Below, piece by piece: positions 7,351 through 7,428 of a stretch of DNA of 64,000 bases. The translations under genes and the position numbers were made by a program. This DNA is from Octopus sinensis (taxonomy: Eukaryota). Under the pieces are notes generated by a model. The model saw nothing but the letters and a program-made list of their open reading frames with translations, did not search any database and had not been told where the DNA came from. Numbering within the stretch: the first letter of the stretch is position 1; each line of letters opens with the position of its first letter. Where the stretch lies: NCBI RefSeq assembly GCF_006345805.1, contig NC_043007.1, positions 38,626,001 to 38,690,000 on the forward strand. The letters run 5' to 3'.

Positions 7351-7428
7351 CTGGCATCGTCTTCAGAATCAGAAGACGGTGGAGTTTCTCCCCCACCGCC
7401 CAAAAAGCAACGAGTCTCAGCCGCTAAC
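7351..7428 (+). CDS. WDR26: Putative CUG-initiated 26-aa N-terminal extension of WDR26 (LASSSESEDGGVSPPPPKKQRVSAAN) with NLS-like KKQR
   Basis: In frame with ATG 7429 with no stop; CTG 7351 has A at -3 and G at +4; resembles the recalled human non-AUG extension motif SSSSDSDTGGASPPPRKKPRQSAA. Confidence 0.65.

Follow-up and report, generated by a model that had tools for sequence, protein, structure and literature searches.

A conserved, probably CUG-started N-terminal extension of WDR26 in Octopus sinensis and its vertebrate counterpart

Where does the WDR26 protein of an octopus begin? The question is raised by a 64,000-nucleotide stretch of Octopus sinensis DNA (contig NC_043007.1, positions 38,626,001 to 38,690,000 of the forward strand; hereafter the window, with positions counted from its first letter). 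It carries the gene for WDR26, a scaffold that builds large CTLH/GID ubiquitin-ligase assemblies and is encoded in humans by a developmental-disorder gene. An earlier note on the sequence had suggested that the annotated AUG at 7429 is preceded by 26 coding codons that are entered at a CUG at 7351 and that carry a nuclear localisation signal (NLS). The comparisons described here indicate that 7351-7428 is probably the coding sequence of such an extension, with leaky scanning predicted to yield two protein forms and with a possible import module at the N-terminus of the longer one.

A conserved coding segment upstream of the annotated AUG

The window was read and translated at 7080-7640. As the earlier note had it, the reading frame of ATG 7429 extends upstream without a stop (as far as 7096; the closing TGA is at 7093, 86 codons before the CTG), and the last 26 codons before this ATG begin with a CTG that has A at -3 and G at +4 (gcaattCTGg). 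The main ATG at 7429-7431 lies in the context gctaacATGc, with A at -3 and C at +4. No in-frame ATG is present in the window between TGA 7093 and CTG 7351. The leader at 7168-7263 is a repeat rich in AAC and CAA. This tract is missing in a second octopod, in which 134 nucleotides separate the CTG from an upstream promoter-like element that lies 257 nucleotides away in the window, and it looks like a species-level expansion within the 5' leader. The open frame through the repeat was considered as evidence of coding and rejected, on the grounds that the repeat is open in every frame and that the second octopod lacks the tract. Only the last 26 codons are informative for this reason. The break from the repeat that had been reported at these codons is real, and the amino-acid sequence that follows it is conserved across phyla.

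A search with the extension and exon 1 found 17 predictions in the style of open reading frames (ORFs) from public assemblies. Most of them read (I/S/T)-LASSSESEDGG-x-S-PPP-x-KKQR, with unrelated sequence directly upstream. Within exon 1, the extension is conserved better than any other part except the beginning of the LisH motif at the exon end. In an alignment of 13 ORFs it holds 12 of the 16 invariant exon-1 columns (L3, S5, S6, S7, E10, G12, G13, P17, P18, K20, K21 and R23), while the stretch from the AUG to the LisH motif holds only four. Two further residues of the acidic cluster, S9 and D11, are nearly invariant in the same alignment.

A profile search of 1.84 billion representative proteins returned 178 matches, many of which cover the profile from position 1. 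After extraction, 88 distinct cores could be aligned to a hidden Markov model of the extension, and 76 distinct peptides fitted the full pattern. That pattern itself required K[KR]x[KR], which is accordingly present in 76 of 76, as KKQR, KKSR, KKLR, KRAR and others. The element [ST]-P-P is retained in 53 of the 76. Before the leucine, S, T or I predominates, in keeping with A at -3.

Carriers of the peptide were named from their sources or by comparing their exon 1 with named proteins, by identity for Ridgeia and by similarity for the others. They include the annelid Ridgeia piscesae (P0003, identical to P0205), an oyster (P0002/P0018, compared with Saccostrea), a priapulid (P0023, with Priapulus), a chelicerate (P0020/P0021, with Limulus) and the amphipod Trinorchestia longiramus (KAF2369061.1). 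Among fishes the carriers are Aldrovandia, Polypterus, Bagarius, Phoxinus, Labeo, Lepisosteus, Denticeps, Nothobranchius and Cyprinus, and among tetrapods Pleurodeles, Columba, Zonotrichia, Apteryx and the pangolin Manis. The CTG-started motif is present in the arthropod sequences read, which come from a chelicerate, an amphipod and a marine arthropod. The frame is thus kept across molluscs, annelids, arthropods and vertebrates, as the earlier note had anticipated.

The pattern of nucleotide change is that of a protein-coding sequence. It was examined in a 21-codon core from seven independent invertebrate lineages, in which 7, 5 and 16 sites vary at codon positions 1, 2 and 3, with mean pairwise differences of 0.15, 0.10 and 0.50. 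The ratio of nonsynonymous to synonymous differences (pN/pS) is 0.275, so that the bias toward synonymous sites that had been put forward as a check is found. Serines in the extension are retained across switches between TCN and AGY codons. In the 63 nucleotides preceding the CTG, differences amount to 0.72 per site, as in random sequence, compared with 0.25 in the core. Purifying selection at the protein level is evident, and it starts at the CTG.

The CUG codon and the vertebrate extension

DNA was read for ten lineages besides the window, and in all ten the leucine that opens the conserved peptide is encoded by CTG. As a control, the invariant leucines of the LisH motif were scored in the same exon and lineages. 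These use all six leucine codons, and CTG accounts for 4 of 33 (12%). Ten independent CTGs would arise under this background with P ~7e-10, and the contrast with the control leucines means that the codon itself is selected, not only the amino acid. The initiation context is kept as well, with A at -3 in nine lineages and G in the priapulid, and with G at +4 in all ten. Conservation of the amino-acid sequence starts at this leucine.

Upstream of the CTG, in-frame stops occur 5 to 88 codons away across the loci, and in the ten other loci the frame runs without interruption into the main coding sequence. No in-frame ATG lies between the nearest upstream stop and the CTG in the window or in the other loci read. 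Between the CTG and the main ATG there is no ATG in any frame over distances of 78-84 nucleotides in most invertebrates (78 in the window) and 216-228 nucleotides in vertebrates. One ORF outside the set of lineages for which DNA was read, P0100, has M in place of the opening leucine. Two lineages, represented by L001 565-725 and L014 1567-1745 (the latter from a marine arthropod in a Tara metagenome), lack the usual MQ.NG start codon, and the next in-frame ATG is 53-59 codons past the CTG. In these two, most of the full-length protein may come from initiation at the CUG.

An extension of vertebrate WDR26 has been described previously. A conserved N-terminal extension with ACG and CUG starts was reported together with a western doublet that matches a 72.1 kDa AUG form and an 81.3 kDa ACG form (Ivanov et al. 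2011, PMC3105428). The same study described an AUU-initiated extension of fly WDR26 (CG7611) and inferred that the vertebrate and fly extensions are independent in origin. Proteogenomics has since detected a human peptide, ASAAEGVGEPGASAGR, encoded in the 5' leader of WDR26, and the study names a CUG in strong context at chr1:224622083 and an ACG at chr1:224622107 (PMC5834625). WDR26 is nevertheless listed for GENCODE v35 among seven genes of the Ivanov set without an annotated near-cognate proteoform or intact extension (10.1101/2022.05.02.490320). The non-AUG extension that the earlier note gave for human WDR26 is real and published. The 'N-terminal extension' of PMC5105943 is wording from a domain legend and is unrelated to these non-AUG extensions.

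The octopus and vertebrate peptides align directly. Against the gar extension, 16 of 24 residues are identical without gaps, close to the 16 of 23 that had been estimated for the human sequence. The alignment scores 82, compared with 25.3 +/- 4.7 for shuffled sequences (z = 12), and none of 5000 shuffles reaches this value. The octopus peptide aligns with mammalian sequence too. Fishes and a rat model were recovered when a bird ORF served as the search seed, but neither human nor any other mammal yielded an extension, and the mammalian comparison rests on the pangolin model, the published human peptide and the published coordinates.

In the pangolin model, SSSSDSDAGGASPPPRKKPRASAA is directly continued by a sequence identical to the published human peptide. 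In its segment T-LASASSSSDSDAGGASPPPRKKPR-ASAAEGVGEPGASAGR, the part from LAS to PR is exactly 24 residues long, and in human the distance from the CUG to the peptide detected by mass spectrometry is 24 codons. Because these two spacings agree, the human CUG is the positional counterpart of octopus CTG 7351. The human string given in the earlier note, SSSSDSDTGGASPPPRKKPRQSAA, was essentially right. It differs from the pangolin at two positions (T for A and Q for A), and the A after PRKKPR is confirmed for human by the published peptide.

In vertebrates the CUG and an ACG eight codons upstream are both conserved, and bird and teleost DNA both read ...ACC ACG GCC GCT CTC GG(C/T) GAG GAA ACT CTG GCC.... 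Octopus and vertebrates share the position of the extension in exon 1, upstream of the MQ.NG start of the same gene, the same CUG and context, and a common order of motifs: LAS, an acidic serine run, GG, S-PPP, [RK]KK-x-R and SAA. The vertebrate extension differs in that about 50 additional codons separate the motif from the main AUG, and in the further ACG, which is treated as the human start in PMC3105428. Fly CG7611 likewise has a non-AUG extension of this gene in a protostome. Its start is AUU, and its likeness to the octopus case is drawn from the published description rather than from sequence.

On the strength of these alignments, the octopus extension is judged to be homologous to that of vertebrate WDR26. 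The vertebrate and protostome sequences read here, a set with the fly sequence outside it, point to a single origin before the protostome/deuterostome split. The bilaterian age proposed in the earlier note thus agrees with the homology between protostomes and vertebrates and with the fixed CTG. Its view that the extension is invisible to AUG-based gene models is also borne out, in that the Octopus vulgaris model and all of the invertebrate RefSeq models listed start at MQ.NG.

Candidate functions and alternative readings

Scanning rules, the conserved CUG in strong context and the AUG-free path that follows it suggest how two forms could arise from one mRNA. Ribosomes scanning the leader would meet CUG 7351, and a fraction would start there. 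The remainder would pass through 78 nucleotides free of ATG and start at AUG 7429. The products would be a long form of ~596 residues, with expected peptides such as (Ac-)ASSSESEDGGVSPPPPK, and the annotated form of ~570 residues. These lengths, recomputed with the conserved last exon at 53698-53729, are about those given previously (597 and 571).

The extension appears to be an ancient module, composed of an acidic serine cluster, GG, S-PPP and K-K/R-x-R, that shares a common ancestor with the vertebrate ACG/CUG extension. Nuclear import is plausible and is its most likely function because a K-K/R-x-K/R core follows S/T-P-P-P and an acidic serine run. If so, the module would act as an import signal tuned by phosphorylation and would set the nuclear share of WDR26 and of the CTLH E3 ligase. 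The octopus KKQR fits the K(K/R)x(K/R) pattern as the earlier note had stated, and K20, K21 and R23 are among the invariant columns. For the motif as a working NLS, however, the case is tentative and falls a little short of evenly balanced.

Two known systems offer parallels. The CcN motif of SV40 large T antigen consists of a CK2 site, a CDK site and an NLS. In WDR26, acidic serines of the CK2 type are similarly followed by a Ser-Pro a few residues before the K-K/R-x-K/R core, and the resemblance noted earlier holds at the level of pattern, with SSSESED and S-PPPP preceding KKQR as predicted phosphosites. CK2-type phosphorylation of the acidic serines is likewise a prediction. The likeness extends to pattern only, and the invariant GG and PPP of WDR26 lie outside the CcN definition. 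FGF2 and FGF3/int-2 have CUG-initiated nuclear isoforms that were demonstrated by experiment and are vertebrate-specific. There, too, leaky scanning past an in-frame CUG adds an N-terminus with a nuclear targeting signal, such that the choice of start sets localisation. The proteins and sequences are unrelated to WDR26, for which the corresponding events are deduced and would be far older.

Several points weigh against a CUG-started import module as proposed here. Use of the CUG in octopus is read from the sequence, and we regard it as highly probable. The ORF database returns only lineages in which the frame is intact, so losses are invisible in it, and no WDR26 extension is found in mosquito according to Ivanov et al. 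2011 (PMC3105428). The upstream ACG may be the main start in vertebrates. Another basic cluster, KKKKR, precedes the LisH motif in vertebrate WDR26, and the vertebrate short form consequently need not lack access to the nucleus. Finally, the GG, the PPP and the acidic serines are conserved far beyond what a plain NLS needs, and the strictness of the GG and PPP suggests additional or different partners.

The alternative that survives best starts from this last point. The extension could be translated from the CUG while its basic motif serves as something other than an import signal, for example, as a pseudo-substrate that folds onto the beta-propeller of WDR26, or as a degron or phospho-dependent docking site. 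There is a precedent on the same protein. The propeller of WDR26 recognises a basic motif that lies within NMNAT1 and overlaps the NMNAT1 NLS, and the N-terminus of YPEL5 blocks this interaction by mimicry (PMC7616709). The short basic motif of the extension resembles these ligands, and the strict conservation of SSSESEDGG and PPP is more easily accommodated. However, the NMNAT1 motif that was mutated includes a tryptophan (K126/R127/K128/W129), and replacement by the SV40 NLS abolished ubiquitylation, so that an SV40-type NLS is no substitute for it (PMC7616709). No aromatic residue stands beside KKQR in octopus or in the consensus. A role of this kind is unlikely, though it deserves to be taken seriously.

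A less probable alternative accepts translation of the peptide but places its start elsewhere, either at an AUG supplied by an unseen upstream exon that is joined just before 7351 or at another near-cognate codon, such as AUU 7348 or CUG 7300. An ATT precedes the CTG in octopus and in two other lineages, AUU and ACG have been named as the starts for flies and human, respectively (Ivanov et al. 2011, PMC3105428), and some gene models (Trinorchestia, birds and the pangolin) reach the peptide from upstream ATGs. Against this, conservation in invertebrates begins at the CTG, and the codon before it varies by lineage (ATT, ATA, AGC, GCC or ACT). No splice acceptor is shared before the CTG, as one lineage lacks an AG in the preceding 30 nucleotides, and in-frame stops come as near as 5 codons upstream. 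A start elsewhere also leaves unaccounted for the fixation of CTG where leucine could use six codons. This reading is improbable.

Some observations concern the nucleotide sequence itself. At 7375-7398, eight invertebrate sequences hardly vary at the synonymous sites of GGT (Gly) and CCA CCG (Pro-Pro), in contrast to the variable third positions at 16 of 21 codons of the core, and the bases could pair as CGGUGG/CCACCG. This hairpin, located at +27 to +48, was considered as a downstream enhancer of CUG use and gained no support. No covariation is seen among its pairs, which are disrupted in vertebrates. The fold is no more stable than shuffled sequences (z = -1.4), and no Rfam match occurs in 6900-7700 at E <= 1. 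Separately, bird-like (L011 533-602) and teleost (L012 992-1061) leaders are identical at 25 of 26 positions before the CTG and at 44 of 44 after it. The latter include every synonymous site, which exceeds what protein coding explains and hints at constraint on nucleotides around the vertebrate ACG and CUG starts.

The idea that 7351-7428 is an untranslated leader conserved for an RNA structure, a promoter or a transcription start site (TSS) element could draw on the near-fixed GGT and CCA CCG and on the bird-teleost identity, but it is largely refuted by the codon-position pattern and is very improbable given the serines kept through codon switches, a frame to the main AUG that survives spacers of 0 to ~50 codons, the failure of the hairpin and the human peptide detected from the homologous region (PMC5834625).

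The octopus locus and the wider meaning of the extension

The gene in the window was identified by tblastn with a human WDR26 sequence used as a search probe only, which placed its exons on the + strand from 7.4 to 51.7 kb. The best database matches of the assembled octopus protein are an Octopus vulgaris 'repeat-containing 26-like' protein (P0177, 577 residues) and an O. bimaculoides entry, followed by WDR26 from molluscs, annelids, a brachiopod, nemerteans, horseshoe crabs, a priapulid and vertebrates. P0177 begins MQSNGCPQHNGESEE... and shows 100% identity to the window over all of exon 1 from ATG 7429 onward, which establishes this as an Octopus WDR26 locus with an AUG-started public model. 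The 3' end of P0177 runs into the intron after 51721 (window 51721-51774). Exon 1 is flanked on both sides by dense TAGA, TA and GT/CA microsatellites (6600-6830 and 7680-8040), which are ordinary for an octopus genome. The features of the locus are collected in Table 1.

Table 1. Features of the WDR26 locus in the window
Feature	Position	Strand	Basis or remark
CRE-like (cyclic AMP response element-like) element, TGACGTCA...CAAAACAAATTTGGTCAC	7093..7123	+	probably promoter-proximal; 257 nucleotides upstream of CTG
Short out-of-frame upstream ORF, MLQQIT-stop	7316..7336	+	ends 14 nucleotides before CTG
Start context GCAATT-CTG-G (G -6, C -5, A -3, G +4)	7345..7354	+
Proposed CUG start of the long form of WDR26	7351..7353	+	CTG fixed; conservation edge
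N-terminal extension, 26 codons, LASSSESEDGGVSPPPPKKQRVSAAN	7351..7428	+	translation; conservation; coding signal
Acidic serine cluster SSSESED with CK2-type S-x-x-E/D patterns	7357..7377	+
GG-V-S-PPPP linker with Ser-Pro site	7378..7401	+
Basic motif KKQR, fits K-K/R-x-K/R monopartite NLS pattern	7402..7413	+
Rest of coding exon 1, annotated AUG to start of LisH motif	7429..7631	+	100% identity to P0177 residues 1-67
Splice donor GTGAGT	7632	+
Remaining WDR26 coding exons (CTLH and WD40 parts)	10057..53729	+	tblastn with human probe and P0177
Last WDR26 exon, ...DNESGRSTPV-stop	53698-53729	+	conserved; good acceptor precedes

Two elements of the leader may bear on expression of the long form. 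The CRE-like element is nearly identical in the second octopod. Six lineages have GACGTCA 105-257 nucleotides upstream of the CTG, and two more have it farther upstream, at 517-588 nucleotides, with distances of 105-190 nucleotides in the annelid, the chelicerate and two further lineages. In several ORF translations the element appears as 'DVTSQNK' or 'TSFSKTNLVT'. It probably serves WDR26 as a core promoter element of very old origin, and it lends indirect support to a TSS upstream of 7351. Spliced, transcript-derived ORFs from other taxa contain the extension peptide. The second element is the short upstream ORF. Its ATG is the only one that a scan of the 260 nucleotides before the CTG revealed. 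The second octopod retains the ORF (as MIQQIT-stop), and a similar one ends 5 nucleotides before the CTG in another lineage, although such ORFs are not universal. The ORF could tune the ratio of CUG to AUG usage.

Since the vertebrate extension was published in 2011, the octopus case is an ortholog of a known feature. What is new is evidence that the extension and its CUG predate the protostome/deuterostome split, as opposed to the independent vertebrate and fly origins inferred in PMC3105428. No literature was found on an NLS in the WDR26 extension, or on the extension in invertebrates other than flies. The WDR26 entries in the PDB hold a 645-residue, AUG-started chain without the extension, and the WDR26 constructs in PMC7616709 are isoform 2, which lacks it as well.

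A broader proposal, which we hold to be possible but rather doubtful, is that the CUG and a phospho-regulatable import module have been kept together since before that split, that the long form would represent a separate nuclear version of the CTLH E3 ligase under regulation, and that the balance between long and short forms would depend on the stringency of start-codon selection (eIF1/eIF5), perhaps together with the short upstream ORF. The extension may in this way control how the ligase is divided between nucleus and cytoplasm. If a regulated nuclear long form exists, the AUG-started constructs used in structural and most functional work on WDR26 would have missed this layer of control. The exact CUG common to octopus, annelids, arthropods, priapulids and vertebrates would place this codon among the oldest non-AUG starts on record. 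For annotation, the gene is a clear case in which AUG-only models systematically drop conserved coding sequence.
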